A stretch of 64,000 nucleotides of DNA from Macrostomum lignano (taxonomy: Eukaryota), in NCBI GenBank assembly GCA_002269645.1, contig NIVC01000539.1, positions 124,001 to 188,000 of the forward strand, written 5' to 3'. The notes beneath the pieces are model-generated. The model saw nothing but the letters and a program-made list of their open reading frames with translations, made no database searches and was not told the DNA's origin. Position numbers and translations under genes: made by a program. Positions 12,770-36,673 of the stretch are shown one piece after another. How positions within the stretch are numbered: the stretch's first letter is position 1; each line of letters opens with the position of its first letter.

Positions 12770-14310
12770 AGAGATGAGATGAGAGAAGGGATGAGAGAAG
12801 AGGTGACAGAGGAAATGAGAGCGGAGAGAAGAGAGAAGAGGTGACACAGGAAATGAGAGCGGAGAGAAGAGAGAAGAGGTGACACAGGAAATGAGAGCGG
12901 AGAGAAGAGAGAAGAGGTGACACAGGAAATGAGAGCGGAGAGAAGAGAGAAGAGGTGACACAGGAAATGAGAGCGGAGAGAAGAGAGAAGAGGTGACAGA
13001 GGAAATGAGAGCGGAGAGAAGAGAGAAGAGGTGACAGAGGAAATGAGAGCGGAGAGAAGAGAGAAGAGGTGACACAGGAAATGAGAGCGGAGAGAAGAGA
13101 GAAGAGGTGACACAGGAAATGAGAGCGGAGAGAAGAGAGAAGAGGTGACACAGGAAATGAGAGCGGAGAGAAGAGAGAAGAGGTGACAGAGGAAATGAGA
13201 GCGGAGAGAAGAGAGAAGAGGTGACACAGGAAATGAGAGCGGAGAGAAGAGAGAAGAGGTGACAGAGGAAATGAGAGCGGAGAGAAGAGAGAAGAGGTGA
13301 CACAGGAAATGAGAGCGGAGAGAAGAGAGAAGAGGTGACACAGGAAATGAGAGCGGAGAGAAGAGAGAAGAGGTGACAGAGGAAATGAGAGCGGAGAGAA
13401 GAGAGAAGAGGTGACACAGGAAATGAGAGCGGAGAGAAGAGAGAAGAGGTGACAGAGGAAATGAGAGCGGAGAGAAGAGAGAAGAGGTGACACAGGAAAT
13501 GAGAGCGGAGAGAAGAGAGAAGAGGTGACACAGGAAATGAGAGCGGAGAGAAGAGAGAAGAGGTGACACAGGAAATGAGAGCGGAGAGAAGAGAGAAGAG
13601 GTGACACAGGAAATGAGAGCGGAGAGAAGAGAGAAGAGGTGACAGAGGAAATGAGAGCGGAGAGAAAATAGAAGAGAGAACAGAGGAAATGAGAGCGGAG
13701 AGAACAGAGAAGAGGTGACAGAGGAAATGAGAGCGGAGAGAAGAGAGAAGAGGTGACACAGGAAATGAGAGCGGAGAGAAGAGAGAAGAGGTGACACAGG
13801 AAATGAGAGCGGAGAGAAGAGAGAAGAGGTGACACAGGAAATGAGAGCGGAGAGAAGAGAGAAGAGGTGACACAGGAAATGAGAGCGGAGAGAAGAGAGA
13901 AGAGGTGACACAGGAAATGAGAGCGGAGAGAAGAGAGAAGAGGTGACACAGGAAATGAGAGCGGAGAGAAGAGAGAAGAGGTGACAGAGGAAATGAGAGC
14001 GGAGAGAAGAGAGAAGAGGTGACAGAGGAAATGAGAGCGGAGAGAAGAGAGAAGAGGTGACACAGGAAATGAGAGCGGAGAGAAGAGAGAAGAGGTGACA
14101 CAGGAAATGAGAGCGGAGAGAAGAGAGAAGAGGTGACAGAGGAAATGAGAGCGGAGAGAAGAGAGAAGAGGTGACAGAGGAAATGAGAGCGGAGAGAAGA
14201 GAGAAGAGGTGACAGAGGAAATGAGAGCGGAGAGAAAAGAGAAGAGGTGACAGAGGAAATGAGAGCGGAGAGAAGAGAGAAGAGGTGACAGAGGAAATGA
14301 GAACGGAGAG
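12770..14310 (+). repeat. 38-bp polypurine minisatellite (gtgacacaggaaatgagagcggagagaagagagaagag), about 40 copies
   Basis: Period 38, with two variants (cacagg and cagagg). The long minus-strand ORFs are open only because the strand lacks stop codons. Confidence 0.95.
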
Positions 14311-14339
14311 AACAGAAAAGAGAGAACAGATGAGGGCTG

Positions 14340-15481: not shown

Positions 15482-15516
15482 GTAAGCCGGCGTTGGTTGC
15501 TAAGTAGGGATTGTCG

Positions 15517-16570
15517 ACTAGTGAGGATTATCGAGTAGTGAGGATTGTAGCGTAGTGAGGACTATCGAGTAGTGAGGACTATCGAGTAGTGAGGACTATC
15601 GAGTAGTGAGGACTATCGAGTAGTGAGGACTATCGAGTAGTGAGGACTATCGAGTAGTGAGGATTATCGAGTAGTGAGGATTATCGAGTAGTGAGGATTA
15701 TCGAGTAGTGAGGATTGTAGCGTAGTGAGGACTATCGAGTAGTGAGGACTATCGAGTAGTGAGGACTATCGAGTAGTGAGGATTATCGAGTAGTGAGGAT
15801 TATCGAGTAGTGAGGACTATCGAGTAGTGAGGACTATCGAGTAGTGAGGACTATCGAGTAGTTAGGATTATCGAGTAGTGAGGATTGTCGCGTAGTGAGG
15901 ATTATCGATTAGTGAGGATTATCGAGTAGTGAGGATTGTTGACTAGTGAGGATTATCGAGTAGTGAGGATTATCGAGTAGTGAGGATTATCGAGTAGTGA
16001 GGACTATCGAGTAGTGAGGACTATCGAGTAGTGAGGACTATCGAGTAGTGAGGATTGTCGAGTAGTGAGGATTATCGAGTAGTGAGGACTATCGAGTAGT
16101 GAGGATTATCGAGTAGTTAGGATTATCGAGTAGTGAGGATTGTCGCGTAGTGAGGATTATCGATTAGTGAGGATTATCGAGTAGTGAGGATTATCGAGTA
16201 GTGAGGATTATCGAGTAGTGAGGATTATCGAGTAGTGAGGATTATCGAGTAGTGAGGATTGTAGCGTAGTGAGGACTATCGAGTAGTGAGGACTATCGAG
16301 TAGTGAGGACTATCGAGTAGTGAGGACTATCGAGTAGTGAGGATTATCGAGTAGTGAGGATTATCGAGTAGTGAGGACTATCGAGTAGTGAGGATTATCG
16401 AGTAGTGAGGATTATCGAGTAGTGAGGATTATCGAGTAGTGAGGATTATCGAGTAGTGAGGATTATCGCGTAGTGAGGATTATCGAGTAGTGAGGATTAT
16501 CGAGTAGTGAGGACTATCGAGTAGTGAGGATTATCGAGTAGTGAGGATTATCGAGTAGGGAGGATTATCG
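15517..16570 (+). repeat. 17-bp minisatellite (agtagtgaggaytatcg), about 60 copies
   Basis: Direct tandem repeats, one CpG per unit. Confidence 0.95.
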
Positions 16571-25407: not shown

Positions 25408-26770
25408 CCTTCCAGATCCTCTGTTGCTGGGCCATCACCAGCCTCCCAGATTCTCAGTTGCTGGGCAGCCACCCTCCCAGATCCTCGGTTGCTGGGCCAT
25501 CACCAGCCTCCCAGATCCTCAGTTGCTGGGCCATCACCAGCCTCCCAGATCCTCGGTTGCTGGGCCATCACCAGCCTCCCAGATCATCGGTTGCTGGGCC
25601 ATCGCCATACCAGATCCTTTAGCTTTAGTTTGGCTACTCCCAGATTCTCAGTTGCTGGGCAGCCACCCTCCCAGATTCTCAGTTGCTGGGCAGCCACCCT
25701 CCCAGATTCTCAGTTGCTGGGCAGCCACCCTCCCAGATTCTCAGTTGCTGGGCAGCCACCCTCCCAGATTCTCAGTTGCTGGGCAGCCACCCTCCCAGAT
25801 TCTCAGTTGCTGGGCAGCCACCCTCCCAGATTCTCAGTTGCTGGGCAGCCACCCTCCCAGATCCTCAGTTGCTGGGCAGCCACCCTCCCAGATTCTCAGT
25901 TGCTGGGCAGCCACCCTCCCAGATCCTCGGTTGCTGGGCCATCACCAGCCTCCCAGATCCTCGGTTGCTGGGCCATCACCAGCCTCCCAGATCCTCGGTT
26001 GCTGGGCCATCACCAGCCTCCCAGATCATCGGTTGCTGGGCCATCACCAGCCTCCCAGATCATCGGTTGCTGGGCCATCGCCATACCAGATCCTTTAGCT
26101 TTAGTTTGGCTACTCCCAGATTCTCAGTTGCTGGGCAGCCACCCTCCCAGATTCTCAGTTGCTGGGCAGCCACCCTCCCAGATTCTCAGTTGCTGGGCAG
26201 CCACCCTCCCAGATTCTCAGTTGCTGGGCAGCCACCCTCCCAGATCCTCAGTTGCTGGGCAGCCACCCTCCCAGATTCTCAGTTGCTGGGCAGCCACCCT
26301 CCCAGATCCTCGGTTGCTGGGCCATCACCAGCCTCCCAGATCCTCGGTTGCTGGGCCATCACCAGCCTCCCAGATCCTCGGTTGCTGGGCCATCACCAGC
26401 CTCCCAGATCATCGGTTGCTGGGCCATCACCAGCCTCCCAGATCCTCGGTTGCTGGGCCATCACCAGCCTCCCAGATCCTCGGTTGCTGGGCCATCACCA
26501 GCCTCCCAGATCATCGGTTGCTGGGCCATCACCAGCCTCCCAGATCCTCGGTTGCTGGGCCATCACCAGCCTCCCAGATCATCGGTTGCTGGGCCATCAC
26601 CAGCCTCCTAGATCATCGGTTGCTGGGCCATCACCAGCCTCCCAGATCCTCGGTTGCTGGGCCATCACCAGCCTCCCAGATCATCGGTTGCTGGGCCATC
26701 ACCAGCCTCCCAGATCCTCGGTTGCTGGGCCATCGCCATACCAGATCCTTTAGCTTTAGTTTGGCTACTC
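25408..26770 (+). repeat. Composite 31/34-bp minisatellite with higher-order blocks
   Basis: Units cccagattctcagttgctgggcagccaccct (31) and cccagatcctcggttgctgggccatcaccagcct (34). Spacer gccataccagatcctttagctttagtttggctact occurs three times (about 25603, 26080, 26735). Confidence 0.95.
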
Positions 26771-27805: not shown

Positions 27806-28540
27806 AAATCCATCGCAATGTACACACACTCTGACCCTCCAAATCCATCGCAATGTACACACACTCTGACCCTCTAAATCCATCGCAATGTACACACACT
27901 CTGACCCTCTAAATCCATCGCAATGTACACACACTCTGACCCTCCAAATCCATCGCAATGTACACACACTCTGACCCTCCAAATCCATCGCAATGTACAC
28001 ACACTCTGACCCTCCAAATCCATCGCAATGTACACACACTCTGACCCTCTAAATCCATCGCAATGTACACACACTCTGACCCTCCAAATCCATCGCAATG
28101 TACACACACTCTGACCCTCCAAATCCATCGCAATGTACACACACTGTGACCCTCTAAATCCATCGCAATGTACACACACTCTGACCCTCCAAATCCATCG
28201 CAATGTACACACACTCTGACCCTCTAAATCCATCGCAATGTACACACACTCTGACCCTCTAAATCCATCGCAATGTACACACACTCTGACCCTCTAAATC
28301 CATCGCAATGTACACACACTCTGACCCTCTAAATCCATCGCAATGTACACACACTCTGACCCTCTAAATCCATCGCAATGTACACACACTCTGACCCTCT
28401 AAATCCATCGCAATGTACACACACTCTGACCCTCTAAATCCATCGCAATGTACACACACTCTGACCCTCCAAATACATTTCAATGTACGCACTCTCTGAC
28501 CCTCCAAATCCATCGCAATGTACACACACTCTGACCCTCT
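27806..28540 (+). repeat. 35-bp minisatellite (aaatccatcgcaatgtacacacactctgaccctcy), about 21 copies
   Basis: Direct tandem repeats. Confidence 0.95.
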
Positions 28541-28819
28541 AAAATATCCCCACTTCATTTCAATGTAAGCACACAATACCCTTCAAAACAATCTGAGCCC
28601 ATCAAAACAGACAGGCTCACGAATTCTTCTCCTCAAAACTCTAGCATAGAAAGTTGCATTAATATTGATATTTCATTGTCATCATGTCCGCATTTTGCTG
28701 CCACTCTCCCTGCTTCTCTCCGCCGAGAGCTCCCATTCGCTGTCGAATCATAAATAAGCATAACTTGGGATAACCCTGCGGCAGGTCGGGCATATAGAAT
28801 AAGGTTTTAACTCTATCAG

Positions 28820-29116
28820 TAGCATTTGCCCCGAGCATTGAGGTGATGTCGGAGCCCAGCTCTCATCTCAGCCTGTTGCCAGGCAGCTGGCGTCATCAGC
28901 GAGACTCGCCTCCCATTGATGAGGAGGAAATTTACCAGAGAAGTCGCGGCCCCAGCTCTAAGAATCCGCCATCCGTTCGGGCCCGTTACAGGTGGCGCGA
29001 ACGGCTGCTGCACGTGATCCGGTCCAATGTTGCGCAGATCATCCTGTGCGCTCTGGTGCTCATCGATGCGGTCATTGTCATAGCTGAGATCATCCTGGAG
29101 ATCAAGGCCATCACCA
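28820..29116 (+). CDS. HVCN1: Hv voltage-gated proton channel exon: S0 and S1 (5' boundary uncertain; in-frame ATG at 28846)
   Basis: WRERLLHVIRSNVAQIILCALVLIDAVIVIAEIILEIK aligns by eye with human Hv1 S1 (LVVLDALLVLAELILD; D112 and E119 equivalents). Donor a|GTGAGT at 29117, phase 1. Confidence 0.85.
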
Positions 29117-29184
29117 GTGAGTTCTTCGCGGACTGGGGCGCGGGATGAGCCTGGTCTGGCTCAGTGATTTGTTTGTGCTAACCG

Positions 29185-30052
29185 ATAGATGAAGGAATAG
29201 AGAGGGTTGCTAATCTAGCCAACATCATGATTGATGAAGGAATAGAATGGATTGCTAATCTAACCAACATTATGATTGATAAAGGAATAAATGGATAGCT
29301 AATCTAGCCAACATTATGATTGATGAAGGAATAGAATGGATTGCTAATCTAGCCAACATCATGATTAATGAAGGAATAAATGGATTGCTAATCTAGCCTG
29401 CATCATGATTGATGAAGGAATAGAATGGATTACTAATCTAGCCTGCATCATGATTGATGAAGGAATAGAATGGATTGCTAATCTAGCCTGCATCATGATT
29501 GATGAAGGAATGGAATGGATTGCTAATCTAGCCTGCATCATGATTGATGAAGGAATAAATGGATTGCTAATCTAGCCTGCATCATGATTGATGAAGGAAT
29601 GGAATGGATTGCTAATCTAGCCTGCATCATGATTAATGAAGGAATAAATGGATAGCTAATCTAGCCTGCATCATGATTGATGAAGGAATGGAATGGATTG
29701 CTAATCTAGCCTGCATCATGATTGATGAAGGAATAGAATGGATTGCTAATCTAGCCAACATTATGATTAATGAAGGAATGGAATGGATTGCTAATCTAGC
29801 CTGCATCATGATTGATGAAGGAATGGAATGGATTGCTAATCTAGCCTGCATCATGATTGATGAAGGAATAGAATGAATTGCTAATCTAGCCAACATCATG
29901 ATTGATGAAGGAATAAATGGATTGCTAATCTAGCCTACATCATGGATACAGGAATAGAGTGAATTGCTAATCTAGCCTACATCATGGATGCAGGAATAGA
30001 GTGGATTGCTAATCTAGCCAACATCACGGATGAAAGAATAGAATGAATTGCT
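29185..30052 (+). repeat. 44-45-bp minisatellite (atgattgatgaaggaatagaatggattgctaatctagcctgcatc), about 19 copies
   Basis: Direct tandem repeats within the Hv intron. Confidence 0.95.
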
Positions 30053-31959: not shown

Positions 31960-32549
31960 GCGAGAAGGTGGCCCTGGAAGGCGCCTTCGTCAAGACCGCC
32001 AGCTTCGTGAACGAGACCTTCGCAAACTGCCTGTCGGAGCGCGGCCTGCTGCTGCCCGAGTTCACCCAGCGCCTGCTCTCGTCGCCGCAGTTTGCAGAGC
32101 GCCTGGCCTCCAGCATGCTGAACATCCTGCTGGCCCTCGGCGGCCACAACTCCAGCTCGGTGTGCAACGTCACAGGGGTCGCCACGGCGGTGGCTTCGGC
32201 GGGCTCCGCGGCTGCGTCCTCCTCGCCGGCGGCGGCGGCAGCGGCTGCTCGTTCGTCAACAGCTGGACGACCGGCGTCGGCAACTGCCGCTGGACTCCGG
32301 TTGAGACGGGCGGCAAGCGGGGGCGGCAGCAGCGGAGGCGGCGGCGGCGGAGGCGGCAGCAGTGGAGGCGGCGGCGGCGGAGTTCGAATATTCAGCAGCT
32401 ACCAGCAGGATTACAGCCACGCGAAGCTGCTGCACGACGTGTCCTCGGTGCTGCACTACGTCAGCATCGGCATTCTGGGCCTGTTCGTGCTGGAGGTGGC
32501 ACTGAAAGTTGCCTGCTTGGGACGGAACTTCGTGAGGGAAAAATTTGAG
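31960..32549 (+). CDS. HVCN1: Hv exon: very long S1-S2 loop, S2 and S2-S3 linker
   Basis: Acceptor gacAG|gc (phase 1, matches 29116). Open frame ending VLHYVSIGILGLFVLEVALKVACLGRNFVREKFE, matching human FHYMSITILVFFMMEIIFK...KFE (H140, F150, E153, K157, E171 equivalents). Donor GAG|GTAAAG. Confidence 0.9.
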
Positions 32550-32799: not shown

Positions 32800-33329
32800 T
32801 TTAATTTGGCCAAATTAAGCTTCCCGAGGAAAGGTATGCGGAAAATCAAAAGAACATTTAGTGAAAAAAGACTAGCTAGGACTAAAAGTCTTTTATGACT
32901 GACTGTATGGAAACAAGGTTCAAGGTGGCCAGGGGGGTGTTTTGGCAGGAAGTGCGTGCAGGCGCAAACAGGGGGGCTGTCGGTCATGGAAGACGAGCAG
33001 GGAAATTCCATTCTGCCCAGTCTGGTCCGGGAAGGGGAGGGGTACAGAGAGACAGAGAGGAGCGGCGTAAGAATGCCGAAAGTAAAAGTAATGATAACAG
33101 GGCCTTGGACACGGACCTGTGCCGTGCGTGTGCCAAGGAGTGGCCTTGAGAGATAGAAAGCACTCGGAATTCTACAGGGGTGATGTGGACCAGTGAAACA
33201 GGGGCTAGTGAAACAGGATATTCATACTTGCGGAGCCAAGTTGGGGTGGCGGCATGTTCCAGCGAATATTTCTGCTGGGACCACCCACCCCGCGATGCTG
33301 AGGTACTAATTACTGACTGATTGTGTGAT

Positions 33330-33560
33330 TGTGGCTGCATGAATCAGCACTGAGTGTGTGATTGTGCCTGCGGGACTCAGCACTGAGTGAGTGAGATTGT
33401 GGCTGCGGGACTCAGCACTGAGTGAGTGAGATTGTGGCTGCGGGACTCAGCACTGAGTGAGTGAGATTGTGGCTGCGGGACTCAGCACTGAGTGTGTGAT
33501 TGTGGCTGCGGGACTCAGCACTGAGTGTGTGATTGTGGCTGCGGGACTCAGCACTGTGTG
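33330..33560 (+). repeat. 35-bp minisatellite with internal ctgagt/actcag inverted repeat, about 6.5 copies
   Basis: Unit ctgagtgagtgagattgtggctgcgggactcagca. Confidence 0.9.
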
Positions 33561-33620
33561 TGACTGAGAGACAGACTGCAAAAGAGATTTACGACCCAAT
33601 GTGACTGTACACCCGCGCAG

Positions 33621-33744
33621 ATCGTGGACGCCACAGTGATCCTGATCTCATTCGTGGCAGACATCGTGTTCGTGAAGCTGGAATCCACAGAGGTGTCTGT
33701 CATGGTTCTGTTCCTGCTGTGGCGCATTGTCCGCGTCATCAATG
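33621..33744 (+). CDS. HVCN1: Hv exon: S3 and S4
   Basis: Acceptor cgcAG, phase 0. IVDATVILISFVADIVFVKLESTEVSVMVLFLLWRIVRVING matches human ILDAVVVVVSFILD...LRLWRVARIING (D174, D185, W207, R208, R211, N214 equivalents). Donor g|GTGAGT. Missed by the ORF track. Confidence 0.9.
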
Positions 33745-34664: not shown

Positions 34665-35317
34665 CAGGGACGTCGCCACCGGGGGGACATGTCCCCCCCC
34701 CCAGTAAAAGCTATGGGGGGACATGCCAATGCTTTGTCCCCCCCCACCCCACCTTGTTGACCCGTTATGGAAATCAATAATTTTGCTTCAGGGCGACAAA
34801 ACATAGCGCCTGCGGCACCAAAATGAGCGCCTGCGGCACCAAAATGAGCGCCTGCGGTGCCAAAATGAGCGCCTGCGGCACCAAAATGAGCGCCTGCGGC
34901 ACCAAAATGAGCGCCTGCGGTGCCAAAATGAGCGCCTGCGGTGCCAAAATGAGTGTCTGCGGCGCTAAAATGAGTACCTGCGGCGCCAAAATGGGTACCT
35001 GCAGCGCCAAAATGTGTGGCCAAAATGAGTACCTGCGGTGCCAAAATGAGCGCCTGCGGCACCAAAATGAGCGCCTGCGGTGCCAAAATAAGTGTCTGCG
35101 GCGCTAAAATGGTGCCTGTGGCGCCAAAATGAGGGCCTGTGGCGCCAAAATGAGTGCCTGCAGCGCGAAAATGAGTGCCTGCGGCGCCAAAATGATCGAT
35201 GACAACACCGATTTGGAAATAAGTACATGTACAATAGGAATTTTGTCATGTAAATGTACATGTAGAAGTCTGGGCTTTGTCCCCCCCCCCACCATAAAAT
35301 CCATGGCGATGTCCCTG
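34665..35317. mobile_element. hAT-type MITE with internal 21-bp tandem array (gcgcctgcggcaccaaaatga, about 34805-35190)
   Basis: TIRs CAGGGACGTCGCCA / TGGCGATGTCCCTG (13/14). No clean TSD (ACACCCTG vs ACTGTGTG). Confidence 0.65.
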
Positions 35318-35423: not shown

Positions 35424-35539
35424 GCCTGATGATGCACGAGAAGCAGAGGGACGAATTTCGAATTCAACTGCAGAAGCGAGCCCGGCGAATGTCCGAGATG
35501 AAGTGCGACACCCTGGAGACAGAGCGCGACCTTCAAGAG
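35424..35539 (+). CDS. HVCN1: Hv exon: C-terminal coiled-coil start
   Basis: Acceptor ctgacAG|gc (phase 1, completing the Gly of ING). GLMMHEKQRDEFRIQLQKRARRMSEMKCDTLETERDLQE. Donor GAG|GTTTGT, phase 0. Confidence 0.75.
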
Positions 35540-36094: not shown

Positions 36095-36173
36095 AAGCAG
36101 ATCCTGTTCCTGGAGGAGCTCTGCCGCGAGCTCGGCGGAAGCGAAGATCAAATCGGCAACTGCAAGCCGCGGT
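36095..36173 (+). CDS. HVCN1: Hv exon: end of coiled coil (KQILFLEELCRELGGSEDQIGNCKPR)
   Basis: Acceptor ccgcAG phase 0, high GC3, heptad-like; donor t|GTGAGT phase 1. Read-through would give CELL-stop at about 36187. Confidence 0.7.
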
Positions 36174-36673
36174 GTGAGTTGCTCTGACTGCTAAATTGCT
36201 CCAATTAATCTCTTAGACAGTCGGCTCTCACCAATTGCTAAATTAACAAAAGCATTACGACCAACGCGTTGGTTAAAAGCTTGGAAGCAGACTTGTTGCC
36301 TACTAGATTTCTTGTGCTTTTTTGTGAGCAAGCAATGCAGATGGAGCAGTTATAGAGGAAAAGAGATCGAAGCTGCTTATTAGCCAATTCCCAAATGAAA
36401 GCGTAGAGGCGGCTGGCTTTTTCATCATTGCCGAAAAAAGGGGCTAAAAACAGATTCTTGATGCAACTGATGCAGCAGCCCACTCAGGGCTGGAAACTGC
36501 GCGGAGGAAGGCGCATTACTAGCAAATGCTGGCTGCATCTCTTTGTCTAAGCACAGCTTTTTTATGCAGGTATTATTACCTGACATCAAATTTGTCGGAG
36601 TGAGAACGTAAGGGAACCAATCAGGGATAGGTTTAGAAATGAAATTGTTACAAGATTGCACTATTCCTTTGGC

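Follow-up and report, generated by a model that had tools for sequence, protein, structure and literature searches.

A Macrostomum lignano Hv-family gene without the first S4 arginine, putatively of a proline-free spiralian subgroup

Positions 33621-33744 on the forward strand of a 64,000-nucleotide stretch of the Macrostomum lignano contig NIVC01000539.1 (the whole stretch is termed the window) are a real, intact exon of an Hv-family gene, in which the position of the first S4 arginine of canonical Hv1 (R1, R205 in human) is occupied by leucine. The locus is best explained as an intact M. lignano gene of an R1-less Hv lineage, and of the subgroup of that lineage in which no proline precedes the S4 Trp; we put the probability of this reading at roughly 0.7.

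Tblastn searches with Hv1 and database orthologs gave a gene of at least five exons on the forward strand, all with AG/GT borders, compatible phases and an open frame, coding for a modelled protein of 397 residues. The exons and the repeat that follows them are:

28846-29116, forward: exon 1, from the ATG to the donor CCA/gtgagt (phase 1); N-terminus and S1 (…RWRERLLHVIRSNVAQIILCALVLIDAVIVIAEIILEIKAIT)
31960-32549, forward: exon 2; S1-S2 loop, then S2 (H256, F266, E269, K273) and the start of S3
33621-33744, forward: exon 3; S3 (D290, D301), a short S3-S4 linker and S4 LFLLWRIVRVIN
35424-35539, forward: exon 4; post-S4 helix (G)LMMHEKQRDEFRIQLQKRARRMSEMKCDTLETERDLQE, with the EFRIxLQKRA motif of the proline-free subgroup
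36095-36187, forward: exon 5; KQILFLEELCRELGGSEDQIGNCKPR, with a CKP motif
36675-64000: satellite array with units of 54, 61 and 115 bp (Tandem Repeats Finder)

Exon 1 was located by tblastn with human Hv1. An in-frame stop lies upstream of its ATG, and the RxRLLxxxRS motif that it codes is conserved among flatworm orthologs. Exon 2 is bordered by the acceptor cgacag/GC and the donor GAG/gtaaag; the M. lignano protein model P0001 matches the window gene at the junction of exons 1 and 2 and in the loop sequence. Exon 3, read on the forward strand in frame 0, gives IVDATVILISFVADIVFVKLESTEVSVMVLFLLWRIVRVIN and the first base of a Gly codon. Its borders are canonical (acceptor cgcgcag/ATC, donor AATG/gtgagt), and two other M. 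lignano models, P0003 and P0004, are identical to the window over it. Its absence from the list of open reading frames is due to its length of 124 nt. All ORFs longer than 130 aa in 1-36700 lie in repeats or non-coding sequence, with the exception of one that covers exon 2. Exon 4 was found by tblastn with the tails of P0001 and P0002 (E=5e-18), P0003 being identical there, and exon 5 by tblastn with ortholog tails. Exon 5 may either be read through to a CELL-stop at 36187 or be left at a phase-1 donor, 36172/gtgagt, that leads onward past the window.

The modelled protein has 77 residues after the S4 Trp, which align with the same region of the orthologs. The ortholog tails are longer, and together with the phase-1 donor at 36172 they point to additional exons on the far side of the satellite, outside the window. 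A conserved downstream segment of the orthologs, …KEQTxNALKSIAALTTG…, was not found within the window, where exon 5 is followed by satellite. The array starts ~490 bp past exon 5 and extends over >27 kb to the window end with ~92% matches; it may be a giant intron or else flank the gene downstream, and in both cases it lies outside the protein. It is C-rich on the forward strand and accounts for the excess of C over G in the window (19692 vs 12812).

The S4 of the window protein reads LFLLWRIVRVING, with Leu319 (CTG, 33714-33716) at the position of human R205, followed by L320 (L206 in human), W321, R322, R325 and N328. A phmmer search of all PDB chains with a loop-deleted query returned human Hv1 (5OQK, E=1.1e-17) and a mouse Hv1 chimera (3WKV, E=2.9e-16), with Ci-VSP next and far behind at 3e-3. 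The alignment pairs 'lfllwrivrvingl' with 'llrlwrvariingi' and matches W207, R208, R211 and N214, which places Leu at the R205 position. The three-arginine motif RxWRxxR is thus absent and S4 runs LLWRIVR. Human HVCN1 (5OQK, 3WKV) is the best match of solved structure, with ~35% identity over the voltage sensor and all core residues shared except R1.

The remaining architecture is that of the Hv family, namely a four-helix S1-S4 sensor homologous to Hv1 and without S5-S6. The Pfam Ion_trans match is confined to the voltage-sensor part of the profile (positions 27-109 of 241), and the five-exon model holds no pore-domain (S5-S6) exon. The acidic selectivity-filter residue of S1, coded by exon 1, is D74 in LVLIDAV; it aligns with D112, and S1 as a whole aligns with the PDB Hv1 chains. 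Also kept are V78 (V116), E81 (E119), H256 (H140), F266 (F150), E269 (E153), K273 (K157), E287 (E171), D290 (D174) and D301 (D185). The D123 position is Glu (E85). The S3-S4 linker, KLESTEVS, is 2 residues shorter than the human one and contains no His, so that H193 is absent. The original prediction, made from the DNA letters, had named a sensor with leucine at R205 and just two S4 arginines (here R322 and R325), a retained S1 Asp, W207, N214 and S2/S3 countercharges, and a short linker in which H193 is missing and H140 is kept. The alignment to the PDB chains and the gene model bear out each of these features.

The protein differs from canonical Hv1 also in its S1-S2 loop, of ~165 residues (about 91-253) as against ~15, and in its C-terminal motifs. 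The loop is extracellular and carries poly-Ala and poly-Gly/Ser tracts and three N-x-S/T sequons (N108, N154, N160). From S1 to the S4 Trp the window protein spans 269 residues and human Hv1 118; the medians are 253 in flatworms, 242 in the group with an xPWR motif in S4 and 119 in canonical Hv, where the range extends up to 325. The poly-Gly/Ser tract is coded by GGC/GCG trinucleotide-type repeats at 32308-32382. P0003 is one residue off the window inside it (GGGSGGGG vs GGGGGGGG), which suggests a polymorphism of length or sequence.

A search with the full protein was swamped by the low-complexity loop and returned only 2 matches, loop-deleted and profile queries doing little better; relatives were collected with a flatworm profile (HMMER) from 1.84 billion representative proteins, with 1077 matches at E<=1e-3. 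Cestode and trematode orthologs ranked first (Hymenolepis; Sparganum and Rodentolepis, these two with two paralogs each; Schistosoma mekongi; and further Clonorchis, Heterobilharzia, Calicophoron and Hydatigera). The second rank was taken by Lingula LOC106155662, the annelid Owenia, the bryozoan Bugula and the nemertean Tubulanus, all with LxWRxxR, and the third by many molluscan proteins with LPWR or VPWR, among them Aplysia LOC101855857 (P0053). The latter is identified as AcHv3 by its 980 aa and its Leu429-Pro430, as described in PMC10911540. Canonical proteins with RLWRxxR made up the fourth rank.

The S4 motif was matched in 130/154 proteins, some of the matches being spurious (e.g. P0006, P0015, P0049, P0076). 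The R1 position is R in 63, L in 51, V in 10 and I in 2 of these, and K, A, T and M once each. Among the 127 relatives that were aligned, 63 have L/I/V/M there, AcHv3 included. All 13 flatworm sequences have Leu, and the residue is thus conserved across Platyhelminthes. D174, D185, W207, R208, R211 and N214 are invariant in the 63 aligned R1-less sequences, and of the 55 that include S1, 53 have D and 2 have E at the D112 position, as would be expected if selection maintained a working proton pathway.

Two positions divide the R1-less sequences. The residue before the S4 Trp is Pro in 44/44 xPWR (Hv3-type) proteins and L/I/V in 13/13 flatworm sequences. The gasket and charge-transfer residue F150 is replaced by L/M/I in the same 44 xPWR proteins, whereas Phe is found in 64/64 canonical Hv and in 12 of the 13 flatworm sequences, the window protein included. 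The replacement of F150 co-varies with the S4 proline, and it may bear on the leak of AcHv3. Among the representatives, 11 of the 15 flatworm or non-proline tails carry a C[KRSE]P motif, against 0/41 xPWR and 0/23 canonical tails; the window protein reads ...IGNCKPR. We also note that E153 is replaced by C/Q/Y/T in the parasitic flatworm orthologs (P0002, P0008-P0017), while the free-living Macrostomum has Glu (E269).

The ‘unconventional’ Hv3-type channels were defined by Chaves et al. in their 2023 review (Biomolecules, PMC10377628) by xPWRxxR, a large S1-S2 loop and large intracellular domains. The same review (section 2.1.4) reports that Annelida, Bryozoa and Nemertea possess channels with the large loop but no proline, from which it follows that the large loop predates the proline, and states a natural replacement of R1 only for Hv3 channels. 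For Platyhelminthes its text presents just two channels, both from Schistosoma and with a long S3-S4 loop; the LxWRxxR type is not described there, and accessions of Hymenolepis microstoma and Macrostomum poznaniense are listed without comment (PMC10377628). A literature search found no description of the flatworm LxWRxxR type and no recording from the proline-free subgroup. The supplement sequences of the review are damaged at highlighted residues and were used for qualitative comparison only.

The closest non-flatworm matches are proline-free spiralian Hv proteins of several other phyla, whose voltage sensors are 37-39% identical to that of the window protein; examples are Eisenia fetida GIUK01058977, Owenia fusiformis CAH1787434, Bugula neritina HVCN1 and Lingula LOC106155662. 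Like the window protein, they combine LxWRxxRxxN and a large S1-S2 loop with the post-S4 motifs (K/E)xR.EFRIxLQKRA and LCxxxGxxxxxxxCKP. EFRIxLQKRA and CKP are markers that the present analysis adds to the definition of the proline-free large-loop class, and the window gene has all features of the class so defined. Two distinct R1-less paralogs each were observed in Sparganum proliferum (P0008 and P0011) and Rodentolepis nana (P0009 and P0010), and one R1-less ortholog in S. mekongi (P0013); for this genus the 2023 review has just two channels, both of S. haematobium and with a long S3-S4 loop. Given these cestode paralogs and the S. mekongi ortholog, the upper limit of two Hv genes published for Platyhelminthes looks too low.

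The relationships were examined by two neighbour-joining trees; both are distance-based, use short alignments and were built without TMEM266 and the sequences of the review supplement. The first comprised 127 sequences and ~125-127 columns from S2-S4 and the post-S4 helix. It placed all 63 R1-less sequences in one group (bootstrap 46%), and the window protein in a 13-member flatworm clade (62%) within a proline-free group of 17-19 members. In the second tree S1 was added and the R1 and Pro columns were masked (115 sequences, 164 columns); the flatworm clade was recovered at 99%, the proline-free group at 49% and an exactly monophyletic R1-less set at 37%. Under a tolerant definition, by which a split has to hold the flatworms with >=90% of the R1-less and <=10% of the R1-bearing sequences, 81% of 300 replicates contain a split uniting flatworms with R1-less sequences. 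In these trees the window protein groups with AcHv3 apart from Hv1/Hv2 with weak to moderate support, and we take the result as moderate support for R1 having been lost once, and early, in Spiralia. By sequence, the window gene is placed in a spiralian R1-less, large-loop lineage, in the proline-free subgroup within it.

That the R1-less sequences form one neighbour-joining group argues for an inherited rather than an independent loss. An independent loss in flatworms, with Leu and the long S1-S2 loop as homoplasies relative to mollusc Hv3, is improbable, though it is the alternative that fares best. It draws on the exact bootstrap of just 37-46% for one R1-less clade, on the absence of a clear gap in flatworm-profile scores between xPWR proteins (up to 108.6 bits) and canonical or Hv2-like proteins (up to 106.4 bits), and on the ease with which long loops arise, canonical Hv reaching 325. 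It has to contend with the exact monophyly of the R1-less set in both trees, in one of them with the R1 and Pro columns masked, with the tolerant split in 81% of replicates, and with the brachiopod, annelid, nemertean and bryozoan proteins that bridge the groups and have the post-S4/CKP architecture in common. The original prediction had left a choice between an Hv3-like and an independently evolved channel. The latter is not favoured, as the R1-less sequences group even with R1 and Pro masked and the trait also occurs in cestodes, trematodes, a brachiopod, an annelid, a nemertean and a bryozoan. The former holds in the broad sense of a missing R1, a large loop and the grouping in the trees, and does not hold in the strict sense of Hv3, since the motif is LLWR without Pro and the gasket Phe is kept.

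To our knowledge, AcHv3 is the only member of the R1-less Hv lineage that has been characterised by electrophysiology. The protein, from Aplysia californica (LOC101855857, XM_005094218), was reported by Chaves et al. (FEBS J, PMC10911540) to have 980 residues, a 299-residue S1-S2 loop, no R1 and a Pro directly ahead of the S4 Trp; its current is proton-selective, it gates at about 60 mV per e-fold, and it leaks protons. It had been proposed as the experimental comparator for the window gene from the outset, and the very large S1-S2 loop, ~165 residues in the window protein, adds to the likeness. Both proteins lack a pore domain, have Leu for R1 (L429 in AcHv3, L319 in the window protein), keep Trp, R2, R3 and the N214 equivalent as well as the S1 Asp, the S3 acidic residues and H140, and fall into the same R1-less neighbour-joining group. 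They differ in LPWR vs LLWR, in the gasket residue (L/M/I in the AcHv3-type xPWR group, Phe in the window protein), in the post-S4 sequence (HEHVKLRLLY in AcHv3 vs EFRIQLQKRA…CKP) and in the AcHv3 C-terminus of 535 residues, and their voltage sensors are only ~27% identical.

Proton conduction and dimerisation are inferred for the window protein, and so are a weak dependence on voltage, a leak and the sensitivity to Zn2+. As extrapolated from AcHv3, at that identity of ~27%, the four-helix voltage sensor without pore domain would conduct protons through its own core, with D74 of S1 and R322 (R2) forming the selectivity filter. AcHv3 likewise does not have the full three-arginine RxWRxxR motif, yet conducts protons (PMC10911540). 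Dimerisation would probably take place through the helix that extends S4. Two S4 arginines would carry less gating charge than Hv1 and give a shallower voltage dependence. The Zn2+ site is predicted to be weakened, with H193 missing and H256, E81 and E85 present. The leak or pH-gated H+ pathway and the reduced Zn2+ block put forward in the original prediction stay at the level of predictions.

A leak like that of AcHv3 is not assured, because there is no Pro before the Trp and the gasket Phe is kept. The authors of AcHv3 are not convinced that an R-to-L replacement by itself accounts for the leak and the weak gating, and suspect the proline or a breached hydrophobic gasket instead (PMC10911540). 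By the same doubt, the biophysics predicted here could be wrong in degree. With its acidic counter-charges, gasket F266 and straight, proline-free S4, the Macrostomum channel may close better than AcHv3, and we give about even odds that it does so substantially, since it is without both features that the AcHv3 authors suspected. A farther-reaching version, in which the Macrostomum channel and the whole proline-free subgroup close properly and are steeply or moderately voltage-gated despite two S4 arginines, is a tentative proposal that we hold to be somewhat unlikely. If it were true, the leak and the near-absent voltage dependence of AcHv3 would be due to the S4 proline, the lost gasket Phe or both, and not to the loss of R1.

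The study of AcHv3 could not tell whether the missing arginine, the S4 proline or the breached gasket causes the leak and the weak gating (PMC10911540). The flatworm protein separates these variables naturally, R1 being missing, the proline absent and the Phe intact. Flatworms also join the phyla that carry the R1-less lineage. M. lignano is a tractable model for knock-down and localisation. The advance is an incremental one, given that public databases already list the gene as homologous to Hv1 and that the class has been described.

A different function is conceivable, in which the protein senses voltage or binds partners in the manner of TMEM266/HVRP1 and passes no protons. Some Hv-derived proteins are probably without channel function now (PMC10377628), the large loop and the tail hint at additional roles, the E153 equivalent is lost in the parasitic flatworm orthologs, and the NCBI pipeline calls the Lingula ortholog, in two of its isoforms, ‘transmembrane protein 266’. 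We consider such a sensor less probable still than an independent loss of R1. TMEM266, as reported by Papp et al. (2019, eLife, PMC6392501), has three S4 arginines (RxxRxxR), Val (V111) at the D112 position, Met (M185) at D185 and no proton current, and is found in vertebrates only. The window protein has D74, D301, W321 and N328, which are invariant or nearly so across the clade, and AcHv3 of the same lineage conducts protons.

TMEM266, which also has an Hv1-related voltage sensor and in addition a coiled coil and a long tail, was considered as the class of the window protein and rejected on account of the two S4 arginines, D74, D301 and the flatworm source. On these residue criteria the protein does not group with the non-conducting TMEM266, the trees having been built without it. 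The Lingula anatina LOC106155662 cluster (P0019), for which an older record reads ‘C15orf27 homolog’, has the S1 Asp and LMWRxxR and is Hv-like, not TMEM266-like, so that ‘transmembrane protein 266’ is probably a misleading automated name.

The reading as an intact gene of the R1-less lineage is matched within M. lignano, which also agrees with the flatworm-like source that had been guessed from the DNA. The best database matches are three M. lignano UniProt entries called ‘Voltage-gated hydrogen channel 1’, with identities to the window protein between 94 and 100% apart from the paralog:

A0A1I8F401 (P0001): 94-97% identity to the window protein
A0A1I8HS36 (P0003): 98-100% identity from S2 to the post-S4 helix
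A0A1I8I230 (P0004): 82-86% identity; a paralog

P0003 and P0004 read LFLLWRIVRVING in S4 as the window does, and these separate models show the Leu to be no sequencing artefact. P0001 reads LFLLCAHCRVING at the same place, with Trp and R2 lost, which is either an indel error of the older assembly or a decayed duplicate in a partly duplicated genome. An assembly error or decaying duplicate as the source of the Leu codon or of the exon in the window, to which the S4 of P0001 and the location among hard-to-assemble satellites might point, is very improbable in view of the frame open over five exons, the canonical splice sites, the same S4 in P0003 and P0004 and the Leu in 13/13 flatworm sequences. 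The three entries, found by a named-protein search of limited sensitivity, are all of the LLWR type or of a damaged LLWR type. A variant of the tentative proposal of a properly closing channel is that the window gene would be the main or only Hv-type proton pathway in this free-living flatworm. A 2012 transcriptome of M. lignano contains 3 transcripts homologous to HVCN1, an indirect sign of expression in the species and not of the exact window locus.

The surroundings of the gene are rich in other repeats. Unrelated minisatellites crowd all four introns and the upstream 28 kb and extend over 220-35195 of the window; examples are:

12793-14322, 15508-16570, 25408-26738, 29184-30052, 33316-33562 and 34805-35195: minisatellites
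27806-28543: minisatellite of 21 x 35 bp, just 5' of the start codon
30910-31463: minisatellite of 12 x 46 bp, with copies that are 100% identical
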